In this document: piece after piece, positions 13,146 through 63,715 of the stretch | How positions within the stretch are numbered: position 1 is the first letter of the stretch | Layout: each line of letters starts with the position of its first letter | Source of the DNA: Perna viridis | Taxonomy: Eukaryota | Assembly: GCA_037379345.1 (NCBI GenBank) | Contig: CM074517.1 | Location: forward strand, 23,436,001 to 23,500,000 | Reading direction: 5' to 3' | DNA length: 64,000 nucleotides | Translations under genes and position numbers: made by a program | Notes under the pieces: generated by a model | Told to the model about the DNA's origin: nothing | The model's input: the letters and a program-made list of their open reading frames with translations, nothing else | Databases searched by the model: none

Positions 13146-16100
13146 ATGGTATTATATTCTTTCCTCTTTATGACAGGCCTCCTTGTACAGACTAAATATG
13201 GTGAGTTTGCATTTCATTTCAATATTTACGACCACATTTTAAAAGATGTGCTTTGCTATTGAGTTCTACTGATTTTTTAGGATTGATTTTCTCTCATTGA
13301 AATATATTCTTCAACATTTGGTGAGTATTTTGTAGACTTCAACAACAGTCAGCTCCAAAATTAAAATGATTTTACTTCTTATCTTGATTACACAGATTTT
13401 AAAGATATATCAAGGGTCATCTGGTTTTTAACATTTTCAAGATGAAATGACTTTTTTCAGATGTTCAAATGGACTTGCTTTAATACAAAATTTAATTTTC
13501 GAACGAGAGAATACTGCTGATCCTGATGGAAATACATCTATGATACCCCTGCCAGGGGCACAGTTCCTTCTAAGGCAGGTACTGCTAGACCAGTACCATT
13601 TTTTTATTTTTGATACATCATGCAGTACCTTAAAATAGTATTTTACTCCCTAACTAATTAAATTCAAATACAACTGCCATAATAATTGGGTGGTCCTGCC
13701 ATTTTTAACAAAGTCATTATTATGTAAAAGAAGTCAATTGGAGAGTCATATTGCTCAAACTTTAAATTGGTGATAGCTATGTATGTCCACATGATTTAGA
13801 AATAAGAATGGAATGTTGATTTAGTTACAGGAAAGTGTCTGTCCAATACCAGATACAGAACAATGGATGGTTCCTGTAATAACTTGTTACATCCATCATG
13901 GGGTAAAGCTGGCACTATACAGAGAAGGCTACTAGATAAAGATGGACTGCCTATGGTAGAATATGGTGATGGTAAGTAAGTGGCAAAGTCTTACATTCCA
14001 AGGTTATTTTACTTCTCAAAATAAATTGCTATAACGTATCTGTTGAGAAACAAGATATCCATCAAGTCATGATTCAAGACTGTTTCTCTAAATTTCAACA
14101 AGCTGAAAGCTAGATCTTATGTCTTTTTTTTAGGTTTACGAATACTGGTATTGATAAAGTTTTAAAAGTTTACATGTAAAATGTGTACCATATATATTTA
14201 GATTATAATTCTCCACGAGGCTATCCAAATAAGCTTCCTGATGCCAGGATGGTGAGTAGAGTGATAGCCACATCTACCAGCAACAATGTGATGGACAACA
14301 AGAGAACAGGACAACATATGTCGTATGGACAGTTACTCGCTCATGATTTTATAGAAACAAAGATACCTTCAGGTTTGTGGACAAGGATCCATTAAATTGT
14401 CTGAAATGAGCAATTCTAGTAGATGGGCATTGTATGTACAATGTTTATAAAAGCAAGCATACTGTGAGAAAAAAAACATCTTCGTAATGCAAAAAAAGAA
14501 TTTCATGTGAATTTATATGTCATTGAATTTATTGAGTGTTCACAGCATTTTCATATTTATTTAGGCTTCAGTAAACCTCATATGTAAGATACTATTCTAT
14601 TAAATGGGAGATAACTCAATTTATTAAAGTATAGTTTTTTTTCAAAATTACATTAACAATTGTGGCATCTTTTTTCTTGACCTATTACATTCAGTTAGGT
14701 TTCCTTTGTAGGTATAAATTGCTGTAATGCATCAGACATGGTTTATAACAAGTAAGCTTTTGTGTATCTGCCATCAAAATAAAATCCTTCCAAATTTTAG
14801 TATGTGTTATTTGAAATTGTTGAATGTTGTCTAAGGGTTGAAAAACCTCCTAAAATAAAATTGAAATTAAGTATGAAATATCACGATGCAACATCTTGAA
14901 ATGTATGTTTTATAGTGTATCATTTATCTTGGGTCAGGTTGAGTCAATTTGTGAAGAATTATTGCACTAGAAAATGAATTATATCATCTTCAGGAGTAAT
15001 CTAAGTCACAAAGTTTTAGTTGCTTTTGTCAATATTAAGAAAATTTTGGTTTTCTTTATGTTTTTAATTCAAGATCTTTATTTTTTTCAGCATAGATTTC
15101 TGCTTCCCATTTCAAGTCCCCTCAGGTGATAGATATTTTTCGCCTGGATGTAAAAATTTTGTGAGAGCAACAAAGGCATCATCTCCAAATTATGGAAGCT
15201 TACCAGGTAAAGGTATATATATTCATAAATAATTCAATTCAATTTGATTTGTAACAACCTAGCTTTCTGATTGGTTGGTTCTCTTTGAGCAAACCAGTTT
15301 ACTTTGTATAATCTGGCTTGGTACTATGATGATATGAACATCAATTGGACGACACTTCATGATTCAAATAATCCAAAACAAAATAACATTTTGATTACAA
15401 ATCAGTTATTTGGACTGTCATTAATTAGAAAGTAAATTATTATGAATGTTTATAATTGTTTAACAGGTTTCAAAAACCTGGGTAGGGCCAGTTTACAACT
15501 TGTTCAAAAATAAGAAAAATTCCTGAAGTAAAATCCAATTCTGAAAACCTTAAAAAATTTACAGAAGAAAAATATTTTATACAATCATCTACTGTGAAAG
15601 TACTGTTTTTATGGAGTTCCAATTTTCATGGTTTTTGTCAGTAGGTCAGTAGGTCAAACCACGAAATTTGGTTCCTGACGAATAGTTGTTTCCCATTGGT
15701 GTGTGTACTGATAACTTAAAAACCACAAATTCAAGAATCCACGAACTTGAGTTTATTCCCTGATCCACGAAAATTAGTATCCATGAACAAAATTGCTTTC
15801 ACAGTACATTTTGACTGCTTGAATTTTTATTGAGTTAAAAATTGTATTATTTCAGCTTACAGAGAGCAGGTTAATCTATTGAGTTCCTTCATTGATTGTT
15901 CATTCTTGTACGGGGACACAGAATACTACACAGCCAAACTCAGGGTTACTAACAGTTGTAAGTTTTGTTGTTCTAAGAGGTTGTCCATACATATTATTCA
16001 TACAACATATATCTTTACGCTAGCTGCTGAACTCTCTCTCTTTTGGTCCATGTAGCAAAAAAAAAAGATAAGGATCGTAAGAGTTATGGTTCCATAGCTA

Positions 16101-19100
16101 TCCTTACACTAGTCAAACAGCCCAGAGTTATATTGAAGATCTGTGAATGTTGCAATACTATTAACAAATCTATAACATGGATTTTTCTTGATATGGATAT
16201 TTATTAGAATACATGTATATGCATTTTATTAAATTCAATACAACACTGATGCTGGATTTATCTCCAAATAATAAGTGCATTGAATGTTTTTTTTTGTCTC
16301 ATGCAATGAGTTGCAAGGGGCCATGGAAATGCTGGGTGCCTGTCCGTCCGCATTTTCCGCACTTTTTTTGGGGACATTGGAATGCTGTTCCTTTTATCAT
16401 TTTATAGCAGACACAGCAGGAAAATGATAATTCTGATAGCCAGTATTACACTTGTAGTGCACAGTTGCCTTAGGTGAAATACTTGTACATAATCAACTAA
16501 CCAGTCTGGCAACTGTTGGCACAAAACAGAAGTTCCTCTGTTCCAAACAGAAAACATTATGGAATTTATAATATTTGTTCCTTTAAGAATTTGCAATAAT
16601 AAAAATTTTGTCTACTGAAAAATAACAAAAAGTGCAATAAACAAAATATGCACATGGAAAATTTATGTTATTTTTCAATAGACATTATTTTTATTATTGC
16701 CAATTCTTATAAATTAATTTTGAAAGATATTTTTATCTTTAAACATGAAAAAAGTAGCTCGGAATTCAACTGAATAGGGGCGTGTCAATATTTTTTTGTC
16801 CATTGAGATATAACAGAATTATTTTAACCAAAATTATTTTAACCAATCAGATTACAGTATTTATCTCAAATTAATTTATTATGGAAGAAATGTTATTTAT
16901 ATAATGTTGATTATAAATTAGTGTTTGTTATAGTTACTACAGGAACATTGGTTATAAAGAACAAAATTACATTGACAGCTACAGGAAAATAAAACAAGTG
17001 ATATGAAAAACATCAAAAATAAGTAAATATAATATTTAAAGAATTTTGATAGGGATATTACATCCTTTAGTTAGGGATGTGAAGGTGGACTTTAAACTAT
17101 GACTTGCACGGATGAGGATACTGCTACATGTATTACATGTATAATGGTTTTATTTGATGTGTTAAATATTTCAGGTTTATTAAAAACAGATGAAGGAGAC
17201 CTGTTACCAACATATGACAAAGGACCATGTTTTAAACTTGATCCTGCTCATGATAAGTGTCCCCTTTCTGGTAAGTTTTCATTTTAAAATAATTCCCTTC
17301 ATGGCAATCACAGTGAAAACCTAACAGTAAAACCTGTCTAAAGTGAATCTCATTGGGACTAATTAGACAGGTGTATGACCCTAATTCAAATGGACTTTAT
17401 AACATCATTGACTTATGGTATTTTTGATATTTTAGTATTTAGGATCCTACAAAACCAATCATTCTTTCAGATGATACTAACTCCAAAAATTTACAAGTTG
17501 GATTCTTGTATTCTGTAATTGTTACTTGTACCATCAAGTTCTAACTTTATTATGTACAATTAGTTTCATATTCCAGGAGACAGAAGAGTTCATGAAGCTC
17601 CCAATCTCGGATTGAATGCTCTAGTTTTTGTCAGAGAACACAACAGAATATGTGATCAACTCCGCCAACTGAACCCACACTGGCATTATGAGAAAACTTT
17701 TCAAGAGACCAGAAAACTATTAATTGCTGAGGTTCAGCATATTACCTACAATCACTTTCTGCCATTGGTTATTGGTCACATAAACATGTGTGTATATGGA
17801 CTATACTCTAAATTAAAAGGCCATGACAATGTTTATAACTCCAAGATTGACCCATCAATATTCAACAGTTTTGGAGCCACTGCTTGGCGATATGGACATT
17901 CTCAAATTATGCCAGAGATCTCAGAGTTAAAACAGAATTTTCGAACAATAAATGTACATAAGATTGAAGACAATCTTTTCTCTCCTAATCTATACCAGCA
18001 TAACTATGGTGATAGAGTGGAGGATCTTAGTAGATGGCTGGCTGTTAAACCTGCCAGTAAAATTGATCAGTAAGTGTCAGAAAAGTAGCTGTAACTATTT
18101 GTTGTCATCATGGTCATTCCAACAGAGAAGTTTGGCAGCATGATAAACCATCTAGTAATACAAAAAATGTAAAGTATTCCAGGGTTAGAACTTTTCACTT
18201 TATATTCTATTAATTGCTGACTAAAACATAAGATGAAACTAACTGGTTTGCTGTCTTTAACCATAGTAATGTTGGTAATTTCGAAATTTTTAATCAGATA
18301 ATGCTTTACTTCTAATACAATTGTATATCAACAGATTTCAAGTTGGAGGGATCCAAAACAAATTATTTTATCTATCATCTCCCCCTGGATCTGATCTGTT
18401 TGCCATGAATGTACAGAGAGGTAGAGACCAAGGAATCCCAGGGTACAACAAGTGGAGACAACTCTGTGGGCTAAACAGTTTTATTAGTTTTAAAGACTTT
18501 GGAGATGTAGGAGATGAGCTAGCCAGTATTTATAGGTTCATAAAGTAGTATATTTGTTTTTAATAGGAACATTAGAAATTAATTATTTTCATACCTAGAT
18601 GAAGTTTGTTATGGGTGTTAAAGAGTATTGACTAAATATAAAAGGAGATAATTCATTCTTTTAAGTCTTAAAACAAATACACTCTGACAGAAAATTAATG
18701 ATTTTAAATTAGTTTGTTATTTATGATTACACAGCAATGTTGATGACATAGATCTGTATGTTGGAGGAGTATTAGAGACAGGTCCAGATGGAACAGTTGG
18801 TCCAACATTTGCTTGTCTGATTGGAATTCAATTTAAACTACTGAAAATAGGAGACAGACATTGGTATGAATCTGATGACCCAGTCCTGGCATTTACAGCA
18901 GGTATATACAGACATTGGTATGAATCTGATGAAACGGTCCTAGCATTTACAGCAGGTATATCATAGATATTGGTATGAATCTGATGACCCAGTCCTGACA
19001 TTTACAGCAGGTATATACAGACATTGGTATGAATCTGATGGCCTAGTCTTGGCATTTACAGCAAGTATATCATAGATATTGGTATGAATCTGATGGCCCA

Positions 19101-22100
19101 GTCCTGGCATTTACAACAGGTATATCGTAAATCCAAGTTGGTATGAATCTGATGATCCAGTCTTGGCATTTACAACAGGTATATCATAGACATTGGTATA
19201 AATCTGATGGCCCAGTCCTGGCATTTACAACAGGTATATCGTAAATCCAAGTTGGTATGAATCTGATGATCCAGTCTTGGCATTTACAACAGGTATATCA
19301 TAGACATTGGTATAAATCTGATGACCCAGTCCTGGCATTTACAGCAGGTATATACAGACATTGGTATGAATTTGATGACCCAATCCTGGCATTTACAGCA
19401 GGTATATACAGACATTGGTATGAATCTGATGACCCAGTCTTGGCATTTACAGCAGGTATATCATAGATATTGGTATGAATCTGATGGCCCAGTCTTGGCA
19501 TTTACAACAGGTATATACAGACATTGGTATGAATCTGATGACCCAGTCCTGGCATTTACAGCAAGTATATCATAGATATTGGTATGAATCTGATGGCCCA
19601 GTCCTGGCATTTACAACAGGTATATCGTAAATCCAAGTTGGTATGAATCTGATGATCCAGTCTTGGCATTTACAACAGGTATATCATAGACATTGGTATA
19701 AATCTGATGACCCAGTCCTGGCATTTACAGCAGGTATATACAGACATTGGTATGAATCTGATGACCCAGTCTTGGCATTTACAGCAGGTATATCATAGAT
19801 GTTGGTATGAATCTGATGACCCAGTCCTGGCATTTACAGCAGGTATATACAGACATTGGTATGAATCTGATGACCCAGTCCTGGCATTTACAGCAGGTAT
19901 ATACAGACATTGGTATAAATCTGATGACCCAGTCTTGGCATTTACAGCAGGTATATCATAGATGTTGGTATAAATCTAATGACCCAGTCTTGGCATTTAC
20001 AGCAGGTATATCATAGATATTGGTATGAATCTGATGGCCCAGTCTTGGCATTTACAACAGGTATATACAGACATTGGTATGAATCTGATGGCCTAGTCTT
20101 GGCATTTACAGCAGGTATATACAGACATTGGTATGAATCTGATGGCCCAGTCTTGGCATTTACAACAGGTATATACAGACATTGGTATAAATCTGATGAC
20201 CCAGTCCTGGCATTTACAGCAGGTATATCATAGATATTGGTATAAATCTGATGACCCAGTCCTGGCATTTACAGCAGGTATAACATAGATATTGATATAA
20301 ATCTGATGACCCAGTCTTGAAATTTACAGCAGGTATATCATAAATACAAGTTGTAATCTTTTGGTGGTGTACTTTTTGAGGCAAAAAAGAGTCAACAGGT
20401 AAAACAGAAACTCTCATATAGACAAAGTTACTACTGGGTACTTTCTCTCCATAGTTGAAAACTACAACATACCACAAGTCAAGAATGTCCCCTTAAATTG
20501 TCTTCTAGGTATATCAAGCTATTAAACAATATCATTGTCTCAATCAAACTGCCCTGGTTTTGAACAAGAAGTAAAAATTTAAGTTTGTTATATCCTGTTC
20601 ATAGTTTTATGTTTTGAAGATAACAAAATAATATTAGAGAATAAATCAGTCACTAGCACATGCATTAGAAAGACATTCATACAGTGTATGTACAAAAACT
20701 CAGAAAGAACCAAGTGTAGAAAAAATGCATGCCTAAAAAAACTAAGAAAAAGAAGGCACAAAATGACATTTAATGCACCTTCTCCTTTTTCATTACAGAT
20801 CAGCTGAATTCTATCAAAGCAAACACATCTTTAGCCAAGATTTGGTGTAAAAATTTTGGTTTGGATTACATACAGCACGATATTTTTCAAGTGCAATCAC
20901 CTTGCAAGTACGTTTCATCTCATTCAATTTTTTTTTTAATAGGCAGGTTGACATCAAATTGTCTCATAATCATTGCTTACGTTTTTTATATCACTGTAAT
21001 GGCCTAAGATATGCCTTAAATAGAAAACTACAATTTGGATTTTGCTGAAAATTGAACTTAATCTATATTTCATGGTACTAAACAACTGTGCTAAGTTTAA
21101 AAAAAATCATTGCTCAATTCTAAAGTAGTACTCCAGCTAAGAATTATGCAAAATGTGAATCATGGGTGAAAAACCTTCATATTTTTTTGGGGGATATTTT
21201 GTTTGAAATGCCATAGTAAACAGAAATTAACAGTTGGTTTATCATATAACCCGTGCTCTTACGAGAAAAATATTATAAAGAATGCACTGTAGATTTCAAA
21301 ATTAAAGGAGACAACTCTGTAAATGACACTCAAATACAATAGAATCCATTACATTTTCAATGTTGATTATCTCCTAAGACCAGGCAGATACAAATAAATA
21401 ATTATGCATTTCATAATGTAGACCCATAAAATAACTTAATTACAAAAATAAAAATATGTAGCCTTTTTTTTGGGTGCATCACAATTTTTAGATTTTGCAT
21501 GATTCTTACAAAGATTGCTACTTAAGTTATTATTTGGAAACCATCAGGGGATGACAGATGGACATGCAGTCCACACAACTTTTGGAGGGTACCACATAAA
21601 ACCTTGCCACCTCGTGTGGAGGTATATGACAAAAGAGAAATGTTAAATTTGCCAATAAAATCAAGGACAAAGTGTATTTCTGTGTACCATATACAGTTTT
21701 AGGATGACTATAGTATGTTTGAGTTTATGAGCATGTGGTGTTCCATTTTCAAATGTGCATTATTTTGCATTGATATTATTTCACAGACAGGAAAAAACAA
21801 GTGGTGTATAATAAAACAGGCAATCTTAGAAATCAAAATTATAGTGTAACAACTAGAATCCTTGATGAAATGACTAAACACATAGTAAAATTAGGTCTAA
21901 ACATGAAGTTACACACATTGTCATGCTCGGTACACTCATACAGGAAGCTGATATCAGACAGCACCCTATATTGTTTACAGTTTATGCTTTATCAATATAT
22001 CACCAAATTTTGAATTAATCCACCCACTGAGATCTACGACTTTTATGATGAAAAGATTTTTTTCTATAATTTCAAAAAGTAAAAAAATGGAAAAGATCCA

Positions 22101-22471
22101 CAATAGGAAGTTGATAACGGAGAGTACACAAAATCACTTACATCATATGCCTTATCTACATAAAGTCACATGCCAAATTTGAAATCAATCCATCCACTGG
22201 AAGCCAAGATAATGTGACAAAGTTTGGATGAATGGCACGACAGATAAATGGATGGACAAGGTGATTCCAATATACCACAAACTCATCAAACGGGGGTATA
22301 ACATGAGGTGATAAATGAAAATCTGAAAACAAGTTACTTCTGAAATAAAATTCGTGAAACATTTTTCTCTTCAATATTATTCAGTTATATTTATTTGTTT
22401 ACAGTAAACTTACTTTCTGTGACAGTCTACCTGAAGTGGATCTAAGCTTATGGAAGGATGGGAAAAGTTGA
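13146..22471 (+). CDS. Secreted animal heme peroxidase (peroxidase-cyclooxygenase superfamily; peroxinectin/chorion-peroxidase-like), about 585 aa
   Basis: Exons 13146-13200 (signal peptide MVLYSFLFMTGLLVQTKYG; least certain exon), 13831-13971 (YRTMDGSCNN), 14202-14372 (GQLLAHD, distal His), 14712-14751, 15091-15206, 15856-15957 (REQVNLLSSFIDCSFLYG), 17175-17270, 17577-18069 (GDRRVHE, REHNR, RYGHS proximal His), 18335-18535 (NVQRGRDQG), 18735-18901 (DIDLYVGG, GPTFACLIG, GDRHWYE), 20799-20907, 22405-22471 (DLSLWKDGKS*). Lengths sum to 1758 nt with an open frame. Confidence 0.93.
15590..15806. mobile_element. MITE, TACTGT..ACAGTA family
   Basis: Inverted ends CTGTGAAAG / CTTTCACAG with TA flanks; homologous copies at 22764-22962 and 26412-26627 share AATTCAAGAATCCAC and TCCACGAAAA. 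Confidence 0.8.
18854..20341 (+). repeat. 27-copy tandem array (54/55/59-bp units) of a peroxidase exon 3' end plus splice donor
   Basis: Unit ACAGACATTGGTATGAATCTGATGACCCAGTCCTGGCATTTACAGCAG|GTATAT; the first copy is the coding exon end (RHWYESDDPVLAFTA). Confidence 0.97.
21125..21521. mobile_element. TTAA-type non-autonomous DNA transposon
   Basis: Ends GTAGTAC..AAGAATTATGCAAAAT / ATTTTGCATGATTCTT..GCTAC|TTAA; reverse-complement homologue of 47483-47876. Confidence 0.75.
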
Positions 22472-44775: not shown

Positions 44776-45000
44776 AAAAAAGAACATGCAAAAAATCCAA
44801 ATTTACTATATTTCAATTAGTTTGATAAATTATTATAGTTTGAACAGTTTTCAATTATCATATATGAAAGATTTTAGATAAAAACATTCAGTCAATTTCA
44901 AAAAGAAGTATAATCAAAACCGGGGACCATGGGGTCGGACCCCCATTTCTAGGACAATTTTGTTCATTTCGTAAAATGAGCAAATGATAGCATTGGATAC

Positions 45001-45540
45001 CGATATAATTATATCGAGATAACGATATAATAAGAGATAAAGACATGACATAATTATATCGAGATAACAAAATAAATATATCGGTATAATGATATAATAA
45101 TATCGAGACACCAAATTAATCATATCGAGACAACGAATTCATTATATCGATACAATGAAATTAATATATTGAGATAACGATGTAAATATCGAAATAACAT
45201 AATAAACATATCGCGATAACATAATATATCGATATGAAGATATAATTATATCGAGATAACGTTATAATTATATAGAGATAACGGTATAATTATATCGAGA
45301 TAAAGAAATAAATATATCGAAATAACGATATAATATAATTATATCGAGATAACGACATGAAGATATCAAGATAATGAAATGAATATATCGATATAACGAT
45401 ATAATTATATCGAGATAACGAATTAATTTATTTCAATATATAACGAAATAATTATATTAAGATAACGAAATAAATATATCGTGATAACGATATAAATATC
45501 GAGATAACGATATAAATATATTGAGATAACGATATAATTT
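45001..45540. repeat. About 22-bp AT-rich tandem array (CGATATAATTATATCGAGATAA), probably internal to a non-autonomous element spanning about 44920-45571
   Basis: More than 20 degenerate copies; flanked by the hairpin GGGGTC-G-GACCCC (44931-44943) and GGTTCCCTATGGGCTTCAGTA. Confidence 0.9.
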
Positions 45541-45771
45541 TATTTTTTTAGGTTCCCTATGGGCTTCAGTAAATCAGTTAATCAAACACATACAAACTCG
45601 GTGATTCATGATTAGGCTGGATTTCGTAATAAATTTGACAATACATAAACTGAACTTTTAACTTTGCATGGAAGCATGTGCATACGTGTACATGCTGTTG
45701 ACACAATATTTATGTCGTATGATGTTTAACTGTGCGCCAGGCTGATGTGGCTTGTATTGCAGTATCCTCTG

Positions 45772-55200: not shown

Positions 55201-58200
55201 TTTTAAAATTTCTATTTAATGTTGATATTGGAAAAAAGGGGAAGTGGTCTCAAAATCATATTTTCGAAATGCATTAAAAAACAGACCACAATAAAAATTA
55301 ACCGCCTTTACATGGTTTACTTTTTTGATATAATAAATTTCATATTTATGAGAGAGTTCGAGACAGTCGTGTTTATGTAGTTTTAATTGAGACAATGAAC
55401 ACATCAATACTCACTTGATCGAAGATAGTAATAATATGATGACGCTGTTTTGTACTTCATTTCAAAGCATATCCATACATTTACATCAAACCCACCAAGA
55501 ATTCCCAGGGTAACTGTTTGAACACTTCTAAAAAACACATGAAAGAAAAATAATTAAATTTTTATAAAATGATTATAAATGGCTTTTCACAAAACTTTCT
55601 TAGTCTGTTATATGTAAAAAACAAATTAGTTAAATTGAAATTCAGCGTCAACTACACACTTGCACCATTTGTGAACGAATAAATTTTTTCATTCATTTTT
55701 CTCATTTCTGTAGCAGTTATGTTCGAAGATAGAGTAAAAATAACTAAATGTCTGATTGAATCATATATCGATTTAAATTTCGAAAATTGGTTTGAGTCTA
55801 CACTTTAAATCTGCATTGTTGTTGCTAGATTATTATGGTATTTTACTTATTTGCAATATCACTGGTGCCGCCGGAGGAGCACGACATGCTTATCCTCCCA
55901 GAGCACCTGATTTCACTTCCGGTTCACGTAGGAGTTCATTTTGCTAATGCTTTAGTTTTTCTGGTGTGACGTCTTGTTTCCCTTATCTTAAGTTTCATGT
56001 GTATTATTTTATTTGGTTCGCTACATTGTATATGTAGATCGTCTTTCTTTCATCTGTTCACATTTAGGTCATGCTTTTAATTTTGATGTATTTGAATCAT
56101 TCCACTGCTTACGATTCGGTATTTTTTGTTTGTTTGTTTTTTTGCTGATACCAAAGTGATTGTATTTTCCTTTACCTGGACTTGTTCTTATGCACATAAA
56201 AAGAGGGATATCACGTACACATTATTGATACATATAATATATTATACCTATACCTACTTAGATACATAGATATCTCCGTTGTTTATTTCACAAGTAAAAT
56301 TTGTATTGGAGATTCCTGAAAGGAATGACTTTGTTCTCATATTCATCCAAGAATTACCGAACTCAATGTCATCATACACACTGTCTGACCATACACCTCT
56401 AATGGAACTTGGGTAAGTACACAGACTACCTAATAAGTTAAAAATAAAGAATTTTACTTACTGATTCGATGCATTAAACGTTCTTGTCTACTTTGTAGAA
56501 ATTGTAAGTAGGAAAAACGTTTGTAGTGATCATGGCTTAACCCGGTAAATATATGGCCAAAGAAATTCTGTGAAAAGTTTCTATATACAGAATATTAAGC
56601 AAATGGTTTTTGATACTGGCTTTATCACGGGTATTTCAGGCCGAGCCCGTCAGGGCGAGTCTGAGATGTCCATGAGAAAGCTATTATCAAAAACAAATTG
56701 CCTAGTATTCTGTTTATCAGTAATTTATGGGTAATATTTTATTTTCGTTTTTTGTATGTTAAAAAATACAAATATCAAAATTTTGACATTGTAAAAGAAT
56801 ATTTTAAAATGACCTATTTTGTCGGAATGAGTCAACGTAATACACCCTTAAAACGGCCGTCCGGTTTTGTATCAGGGTCAGTACGCTGTGACATGCATTA
56901 TCGATCTGTGTTCACCAAAGGAAAATATCACAAATTACCGATAAAATGTCATATATATCATGTGCAGTTTCTACTCTACCCTTGGCTGTTTTTTGTCCCC
57001 TTTCGGCAAATGCCGAAGGGGACTTAGGTTTGCACTCCGTCCGTCAGTCAGTCTGTCAGTCCGTCAGTCACACTTGGTTTTCCGGACTTTTTTTGTAATG
57101 CCTCATCCAATTGATTTCATATTTGTTATATAGTTTTATCATGACAAGTTACAAGTTAAGTTCGAATGACATTATGGTTGAACGATTTTTGCAGAAGTTA
57201 TGGCCCTTGGACATAGAAAGTTTCATAAAATTTTATGTTTTCCGGACTTTTTTTGTAATGCCTCATCCAATTGATTTCATACTTGGGATATAGTCTTATC
57301 ATGACAAGTACAAGTTAAGTTCGAATGATATTACGGTTGAATGATTTTTACAGAAGTTATGTCCCTTGGACATAGAAAATTTCATAAAATTTTATGTTTT
57401 CCAGACTTTTCTTTGTAATGCCTCATCCAATTGATTTCATATGTGTTAGCTAGTCTTATCATGACAAGTTACAAATTAAATTTAAATATTATTGCGGCAA
57501 AATGGTTTATATGGAACTTATGGCCCTTTGACATAGAAAATTACATAAAATTTTATGTTTCATCATTTTGATGCAAATTGCTGCTGTCATTCTAGAGTTA
57601 TTTGCCCTTTAATTCACAATAACGAGATTTTTTTTCAACTTTCCAGGTGATAGAAAGAGAATGTCTATATGCAGCTTTCTGTAATGCAAAAATGTTATTA
57701 TCTAATGTAAAATGAAGCTCAGGTTTGATTTTGATGGAATTTCTTTTGCTGTTCAACAGTTATTTTCTCTTGATTGTTAAAAAATAACACCATCCATCGT
57801 TAGTTCACATATATAAAAAAAAATCTCATAAAGGCAATGAGTTCAAAGCCAAAAAGGGGACACTGTATTGCATCAGCAATACTGTTAGAATGCTTGTTAC
57901 AGTTTAGTGGGACTGTCGTCTGATCTGACAATTTTCCCGTTTTAACTGTCTTCTTTAATGAATAAAAAAAATTGAAAAACGCTGATATGTAATTAATTTG
58001 GATGATATTTATGTTACATATAGATATAAAAAAAGATAGTATAATTTGAATTGAACGAAATATAATAAGTTAAACTTTAATATAACGAAAACAATGTCAT
58101 CAAAATAATGTTAATACACGCAACGAAAACAAGGCCTAAATCAAATAAAGTAGTATATAGGTATGGATGTCTATATGGTTTCAAATTATCATATGCTACT

Positions 58201-61811: not shown

Positions 61812-63715
61812 ATGGATATTAAAATTGGATTTATTGTATGCATTTTAGCAATTTCACATAGAGGTAAGTATGTTATCTTATGTTGACTATTCAACAAAAC
61901 AAGATAAAAAAGGAAACCTATTAGTTAGCGTTTATTTTATCATACTGCATATGATATTGATATCAAATGACAATATTTATAAAAGCAATATGAAATTCAA
62001 ATTTATATCTACATGTAACATCAAATAGTATTTTTTGAGTGATTTCAGAAAAAAATATCAAAAAGGGTTCTTAATAGAGATAAAAACATCTAAAATTAAA
62101 GATCGTATTTCACCAGTCGTATATATTTTTAAGACATTGTATCAAAACTGAAGTAGTAAAATAAACGATCGGAGTAGAGTTATGAGATAATGATCACAAA
62201 TGTACTTTCTTTCAGTAAATTATGATTGTACATTCGACGATGGATTTATTGGAACATGGTTCAGTAGTTAATATAAGACTATAACAGTAACCAAATCCTA
62301 TCTGACACTAGGTTCCCATAACTTTTACATAAATGAGGATAAAATTGTTATGTATTAGTAAAACTTCTTTCGTTTGGATAATGTTAATGCCGTTAGGATA
62401 ATTTATATCTTAAAAAAAAGTTCAGGTACAGAAAATCCTGAAAATGGTATCATCAATTAAAACATCAACTAAAACACCAGCTATCAATTAAGCACGACCT
62501 ATGTAAAGATAATAAACAAAGTATGTATATTTTCTTAATGACATGTACAAATGTGTTCCAAAATGCATGTATCTAAATGAAAAAAAAAAACCTTAAAAAA
62601 ATAGTTTTACTTTTCTTTCAGATCCGAATTTTTTTTATTAGGAATTGAAGCAGTTGCATTTATTTGTATTGGAGCTACACAAGTCAACAAAAATAGTATT
62701 TATTTCTACATGAATTCCCATAAGTATAAAATAAATTAAGTGTTGAAATAAAACTTGTTTAATGTTCAAATACATTGGTGTTTTAAAATAAATTAGAAAT
62801 TCAATCATTTATTTTTATTTCAGACAGGAATGTAATCGTCGGTTCTGAGAGAATTTCAATATTTTCAACGGCTCATATTCCATCTAGAAATGCAACAGAA
62901 ATATGTACGTAGACACCGTCACAGGCTGAATATATCAGTATGGTCAGGCAAGGTTATTTACCCATAACTTTAAAACAATATGTATTACTTAGTACATTAA
63001 CTACAGTTAACGATGGTATCCCTTGGATTTCAGTTAACAATGGTATCTTTTGGATTTTAGTCCACGATATCCCTTGGAATTCAGTAAACGATGGTATCCT
63101 TTGGAATTCAGTAAACGATGGTATCCTCTGGAATTCAGTTAACGATGGTATCCCTTTGGAATTCAGTTAACGATGGTATCCCTTTGATTTTGTTTTAATC
63201 TTCCAACGAATATCCTGCATTATGTACTGGTAAAGCCGGAACAGACACAAAAAAAAACCTTATATATATTATGATCTCCTGTTGTCGATCTGAATTTGAA
63301 ATGGATTTAATTTGTCTTTTTTTATTTCTTGCTTTAAAACAAAAAAAAAAAACCGTATCTTAATACTTATATGGACTGGTGTTCAAAAACATAGGTACAT
63401 TTGAATACATAATATTAGAGATAAAATCACATTTACACACCCGAACACACAATACAGCAGTTAAGTCACAGTATATATTTTGTACAATATGTTAATTCAT
63501 TTGTACGATAGTAGCAATCATTTTTATTTATCGTTTTGTGGGTTCAGGAGCAGATGCCGTTCCGGACTGTCCCACAACACTTCACAGAACATTTACGTAT
63601 ATCGTTAATACAGGCGGTTCAGACAAGTGTTCGGCAACGAATGGCGTTGCCTCTTTTTTTAGACAGCAATTGAGCATCGATTATGACATTTGTAGTAATA
63701 CATTTATGTATTTCG
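61812..63715 (+). pseudogene. Unprocessed pseudogene paralogous to the 49298-58267 membrane-protein gene (may continue past the window end)
   Basis: Exons 61812-61863 (signal MDIKIGFIVCILAISHR), 62216-~62351 (CTFDDGFIGTWFSS*, TAA at 62269), 62622-62719 (donor reads ATAAGT), 62824-62952 (EICT*TPSQAEY, TAG at 62910), 63542-~63715 (acceptor reads TGG; CPTTLHRTFTY). Exon order and Cys/Trp pattern mirror the minus-strand gene. Confidence 0.8.
63003..63187 (+). repeat. 27-28-bp minisatellite (CAGTTAACGATGGTATCCCTTGGAATT), about 7 copies
   Basis: Direct reading; intronic in the pseudogene. Confidence 0.92.

Follow-up and report, generated by a model that had tools for sequence, protein, structure and literature searches.

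An animal haem peroxidase gene of the bivalve Perna viridis carries, across the end of its exon 10, a tandem array in which the exon end and the adjoining splice donor occur 27 times. The gene lies in a stretch of 64,000 nucleotides (contig CM074517.1 of assembly GCA_037379345.1, positions 23,436,001 to 23,500,000 of the forward strand), referred to here as the window; all positions are counted from its first letter. In our assessment, the array is probably a tolerated, lineage-specific exon-boundary minisatellite in an intact gene that is spliced from the first donor. An intron minisatellite that repeats the donor is of a kind already described in human genes, and the bivalve peroxidase provides a clear invertebrate example of it.

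The end of exon 10 and its donor are reiterated in tandem

Tandem Repeats Finder placed the array at 18856-20342, with a period of 55, 27.0 copies, 89% matches and a score of 2194. The same program offered an alternative reading with a period of 109 and 13.5 copies. The array is far beyond chance. When it was split at each GTATA, 27 boundaries between exon-end sequence and GTATA were obtained, at 18902, 18956, 19011 and so on up to 20333, and neighboring boundaries lie 54 bp apart in 11 cases, 55 bp in 12 and 59 bp in three. Unit 1 consists of the final 48 nt of exon 10 (18854-18901) and the donor CAG/GTATAT, where the slash marks the exon-intron border.

An earlier note on this DNA had claimed that the end of exon 10 and its donor are amplified 27 times, and both the repeat search and the split at GTATA confirmed this. 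The unit it had described, 48 nt of exon end followed by GTATAT, was found only in part. The 54-bp units are indeed composed of 48 nt of exon and 6 nt of intron, but the 55-bp units contain approximately 45 nt of exon and 10 nt of intron, and the 59-bp units contain 38 nt of exon and 21 nt corresponding to the true start of the intron, which persists after the last copy (20333), where donor copy 27 retains the original intron context. Because the unit types differ in the joint between exon and intron, the array was built by several duplication steps over one exon-intron junction. Likewise, the number and span of the 27 donors reported as near-identical (18902 to about 20333) were correct, but donors 4 and 13 (CAA/GT) and donor 26 (GTATAA) deviate from the others.

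The exon end is anchored by a Pfam match and by an intron position that is common to the Mytilus orthologues and 21 paralogues. Borensztajn et al. (2006, PMC1557585) described a class of minisatellites whose first monomer straddles the exon-intron boundary. The peroxidase monomers fall within the range of roughly 10-100 bp and are arranged in tandem (period 55, 27 copies), the first of them spans the junction, and the authentic donor is reiterated downstream (27 copies).

The array is present in a second sample and confined to one locus

An array of this kind could be an artefact of assembly or derive from a dispersed satellite or transposon, and contigs from short reads are unable to settle its size. 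Such contigs were available from X5, an independent DNA sample from a different study. A 2-kb contig of X5 crosses from the left flank into unit 1, reaching 18883. On the right side, a contig of 869 nt leads from 20284 in the last unit into the flank. An exact internal piece of the array of 121 nt (19597-19717) was present at single-copy depth. Words of the array reached up to about 10 times the depth of the flanks, and the unique remainder of the intron (20343-20798) was found at single-copy depth. Since the flanks enter the array in X5 and the array words are multi-copy, a many-copy array exists in at least two individuals. In the 723-Mb genome, the unit gave 12 matches, every one inside this array. 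The X5 contigs and the restriction of the matches to this locus led us to reject both an artefact and a dispersed element, which we regard as extremely improbable.

The array is young and its units evolve without coding constraint

No array was found in the orthologous introns of Mytilus coruscus (L011, approximately 764 bp) and M. edulis (L012, approximately 283 bp). Both are identical to the array-bearing intron in position and phase, and the M. edulis intron has a similar donor (GTATAT). Among 37 paralogous exons of the Perna genome, each taken with 1.5 kb of downstream sequence, none had a repeat across the exon end. In three paralogues, the homologous intron contains an unrelated tandem repeat that does not include the exon end, namely in L044 (291-386, 24 bp x 4, about 70 nt past the donor), L017 (1338-1739, 21 bp x 19) and L047 (1211-1436, 37 bp x 6).

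Unit 1 is identical to the consensus of the array. Across the units we counted 17 distinct variants, distributed over codon positions 1, 2 and 3 as 8/4/5, indicating that there is no coding constraint on the units. The units at the edges are the most diverged, with four private substitutions in unit 2 (18902-18955), the sole unit that keeps the frame when included, and five in the last unit (20278-20332). Interior units have 0-3 substitutions, most of them shared. The divergence of units 2 and 27 is the usual edge effect of arrays. Higher-order duplications were also detected, as blocks of 114-500 bp with 95-99% identity (95% for the 500-bp block). A coding repeat was ruled out by the stop after donor 2, the variants' lack of a bias among codon positions and the absence of an insertion from the orthologues. 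Judged from its sequence, the array appears to be an ordinary, recently grown, non-coding minisatellite in which selection on the protein would hold the first unit alone.

As to its origin, slippage or unequal exchange may have duplicated a segment made up of the final 38-48 nt of the exon and the initial 6-21 nt of the intron. Later duplications of several units at a time would have raised the number to 27 and, with it, the intron length from about 0.47 kb to 1.9 kb, and everything in the array past unit 1 would be intron. New introns are reportedly created by tandem genomic duplication when an AGGT inside an exon is duplicated. As in that process, duplicated splice signals here would become intron and splicing would rescue the reading frame; the difference is that an existing, ancient intron is lengthened from its 5' end.

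The host gene looks intact

The exons of the host gene align in order with Mytilus peroxidases (61-65% identity), from about 13824 to the stop codon at 22469-22471 (Table 1). The matching Mytilus proteins are annotated as PXDN, myeloperoxidase-like and salivary peroxidase/catechol oxidase-like. Profile and homology searches were run exon by exon, and exon pieces were joined solely to count frames and stops. The upstream exons (13824 to 17272) have open frames with typical An_peroxidase motifs, exon 8 is 65% identical to the M. coruscus protein P0155, and the per-exon matches to Pfam PF03098 cover profile positions 211-377, 373-439 and 425-500. The end of exon 10 agrees with the Mytilus orthologues, in which ...FT[K/I] is followed across the border by DQL. 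Every exon with a Mytilus counterpart, exons 11 and 12 among them, has an open frame and shares 57-65% identity with it. The first exon, which would encode the signal peptide, was not located when the Mytilus orthologues were searched against the window by tblastn. On this sequence evidence, the gene looks intact and open to its stop codon.

Table 1. Features of the peroxidase gene and its array (positions in the window; a slash marks the exon-intron border)
Feature	Position	Strand	Evidence or remark
Upstream coding exons (approximate)	13824-14006, 14213-14377, 15107-15193, 15816-15956, 17171-17272	+	tblastn with Mytilus orthologues P0155, P0151, P0153, P0158
Exon 8 (large)	17577-18069	+	Pfam An_peroxidase positions 211-377, E 1.4e-41
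Exon 9	18335-18535	+	Pfam An_peroxidase positions 373-439
Exon 10	18735-18901	+	Pfam An_peroxidase positions 445-499, E 1.5e-16
Tandem array, 27 units of 54/55/59 bp	18854-20342	+	Unit has exon-end sequence at its end, then GTATA
Donor 1, CAG/GTATAT	18902-18907	+	Predicted to yield the conserved protein (sequence, orthologue alignment)
Donor 2	18956-18961	+	If used, 18 amino acids added in frame (frame count)
In-frame TAG	18964-18966	+	Met by any transcript passing donor 2 (frame count)
Donor copies 3-27	19011-20338	+	Each lies out of frame or past the TAG (sequence)
Unique remainder of intron	20343-20798	+	3' end is a tract of 0.85 pyrimidines, then AG
Exon 11 (predicted), begins ...DQLNSIK	20799-20907	+	65% identity to P0155 residues 553-590
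Last coding exon (predicted)	22405-22471	+	Stop TGA 22469-22471; homology to Mytilus C-termini

A profile search revealed dozens of An_peroxidase genes in the genome. Some of these form tandem clusters on contigs C8 (about 42.78-44.45 Mb), C3 (about 20.26-20.47 Mb) and C7 (about 2.28-2.33 Mb), which points to a strong expansion of the family here. When exon 8, exon 10 and a Mytilus orthologue were used as queries against protein collections, the only product of this gene that was recovered was P0001, a genomic open reading frame fragment of 95 amino acids from this species; no annotated isoform was among the matches.

Only the first two donors keep an open reading frame

If donor 1 is paired with the acceptor at 20799, which was placed by homology, ...LAFTA would be followed by DQLNSIK, as in the Mytilus proteins (...FT[K/I]DQLNSIK). 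Use of donor 2 would insert the sequence GIYRHWYESDETVLAFTA in frame. The earlier note had made three statements here, that donor 1 gives the normal protein, that donor 2 (18956) adds 18 amino acids in frame, and that every later donor (3-27) reads the TAG at 18964. All three were reproduced by our frame count and the first also by the match to the Mytilus orthologues.

Human exon-boundary minisatellites are mostly spliced from the first donor

In human F7 intron 7 ('HVR4', 37 bp x 5-9), LMNB2 (100 bp x 10-15) and PDGF intron 4 (81 bp x 16-18), only the first donor is used (PMC1557585). In IFI6 (6-16) intron 2, with 25 pseudo-sites, and in CBS intron 13, with 15-20 repeats, the authentic donor and the next two are used (PMC1557585). 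The preference for the first donor was explained by 5'-to-3' scanning together with exon definition (PMC1557585).

The peroxidase array resembles F7 intron 7 in being a tandem minisatellite with a junction-spanning first monomer, in which the authentic donor is followed by identical intronic pseudo-donors. It differs in copy number (27 here, 5-9 in F7), in its bivalve host and in the length of exon per unit, which is 4 nt in F7 and 38-48 nt in the bivalve. With so much exon in each unit, any exonic enhancers near the donor were copied too. LMNB2 and PDGF are similar in their long units and comparable copy numbers; they are other genes from another phylum, in which use of the authentic donor only is established. 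First-donor use and polymorphism have been shown for F7, whereas the peroxidase array is known here from its sequence. The pattern of IFI6 and CBS, which likewise have many reiterated donors, would make the form with 18 additional amino acids a real minor isoform in Perna. The use of extra donors is documented in those two genes, and in the peroxidase the third donor already gives a premature stop.

Going by these precedents, the spliceosome most likely joins donor 1 (18902) to the acceptor at 20799, and the 26 downstream copies would be removed as silent pseudo-donors. Minor use of donor 2, with its 18 additional amino acids, or of donor 3, with a premature stop, may occur. Among the 27, donor 1 is the only one that, paired with the upstream acceptor at 18735, defines a normal exon of 167 nt.

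RNA evidence and the choice among donors

Three RNA-type runs were available, X10 and X13 as contigs and X21 as raw reads. The gene is barely covered in them, at depths of 2-4, and its expression is very low in all three. One X13 contig joins 18069 to 18335 with GT..AG ends, which is the junction of exons 8 and 9. In X10, a contig of 269 nt connects 18533(+2) with 18733(+2), also with GT..AG ends, which is the junction of exons 9 and 10 (acceptor 18735). Other X13 contigs are unspliced over the acceptor of exon 8 (17400-17605) and for 35 nt past exon 9 (18536-18570). Lying beside the spliced contig, they indicate a sizeable unspliced share of the RNA of this gene in that run. From exon 10 onward, X13 gave no contigs.

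Several observations weigh against splicing from the first donor. No contig or read in X10, X13 or X21 bridges exons 10 and 11 of this barely covered gene. In X10, contigs of depth 2 lie within the array (19019-19151 and 19519-19575), with none on the unique part of the intron or on exon 11. Donor 1 is weak: CAG/GTATAT agrees with the consensus at 7 of 9 positions and lacks the G at +5 that the donor of this intron has in 17 of 21 paralogues. Eleven downstream copies, the other donors of the 54-bp type, carry the motif of donor 1, CAG/GTATATAC, and many units repeat its flanks identically or nearly so, meaning that position alone can single out donor 1. Finally, the first-donor rule is a result from mammalian cells, not from molluscs.

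The contigs within the array can be explained either by nascent RNA combined with the multiplicity of the array words or by retention of the array. Nascent RNA can do so, since repeated array words pass the abundance threshold of the assembler where the words of the unique intron fail.

The earlier note had taken the 27 donors to compete, with much unproductive splicing, and had proposed that copy number and unit order act as a heritable dial on the output or length of the peroxidase. This proposal is favored by the weak donor and the matching downstream copies and flanks just described, as sequence alone cannot favor donor 1, and by the few low-depth contigs within the array. It also gains from IFI6 and CBS, which use two extra donors. 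An RNA structure that hides the later donors was rejected, as shuffled sequences fold better than the first 396 nt do (z +1.9), and no such structure would therefore mask the later copies. No junction from a downstream donor was seen, but none from donor 1 was seen either. Against competition, the identical pseudo-donors of F7, which are functional, do not compete with the first. Moreover, the array is missing from orthologues and paralogues and its units evolve unconstrained. The F7 repeat is polymorphic, and its associations with phenotypes are weak or inconsistent (PMC3166910). Absence from Mytilus and units without selection fit a tolerated by-product better than a regulator. A heritable dial is unsupported here, and we consider it unlikely.

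A related idea is that the array is not inert, either because splicing draws on many of the 27 donors, all equally weak, resulting in graded unproductive products, or because together they serve as a landing pad for U1 that offsets the weak GTATAT. We give this only a small chance. If either version were true, the length of the array would be a heritable setting of peroxidase output, and the bivalve would be a natural system for studying how the spliceosome chooses among identical donors outside mammals.

Alternatively, the array could damage the gene, with transcripts that retain it or end inside it, at a weakly expressed locus that is becoming a pseudogene. The very low expression is compatible with this, as are the array pieces in X10, TATAAA variants in eight array units, and X21, in which approximately one fragment fell in the array and none on exons. 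In X10 and X13, exon 11 had zero coverage while exons 8-10 had some. However, at such depths entire exons are lost by chance, as happened to exon 10 in X13, repeated array words cross the threshold of the assembler more easily, and the homologous exons, including those downstream of the array, are open and conserved. Damage to the gene therefore seems improbable to us.

A further possibility is that each CAG/GT is a recursive splice point or the border of a 54-nt cassette mini-exon. Every unit does place ...CAG beside GTATAT, and if donor 1 were joined to a unit end, an identical donor would be restored. Recursive splice sites combine a strong pyrimidine tract and AG with a strong donor directly after them and are typical of very long introns, and the intron here measures 1.9 kb. 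The pyrimidine fraction upstream of the unit ends is 0.5, compared to 0.85 at the acceptor at 20799; this poor acceptor quality, next to the weak GTATAT donor, argues against recursive splicing or mini-exons. In addition, the orthologous proteins are without inserted units, and no such joints were seen in the RNA runs, which barely cover the gene. We regard this possibility as very unlikely.

Splicing from the first donor, with the array as a tolerated passenger of the intron, thus remains the reading that we prefer. By itself, the array opens no new question. It exceeds the human cases in the length of exon carried per unit, and it is relevant for annotation, as gene predictors and short-read aligners can choose the wrong donor among 27. 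It also offers a ready natural test, in a mollusc, of first-donor choice versus competition among identical 5' splice sites.

Other repeats in the window

Tandem arrays are frequent in the 64-kb window, which contains about eight of them, and an occasional overlap with an exon end is therefore to be expected. Other minisatellites were found at 692-1141 (G-rich, 33 bp x 14), 44996-45543 (22 bp x 25, with a partly palindromic unit), 57077-57560 (160 bp x 3) and 63004-63186 (27 bp x 7). The next intron of the peroxidase gene contains a very high-copy repeat at 21018-21400. Its word depth is in the thousands in the RNA-type runs, and in the DNA run it climbs as high as about 900,000. Reads of X21 lie on both of its strands, with many loose ends, and we presume that the repeat is a transposable element.

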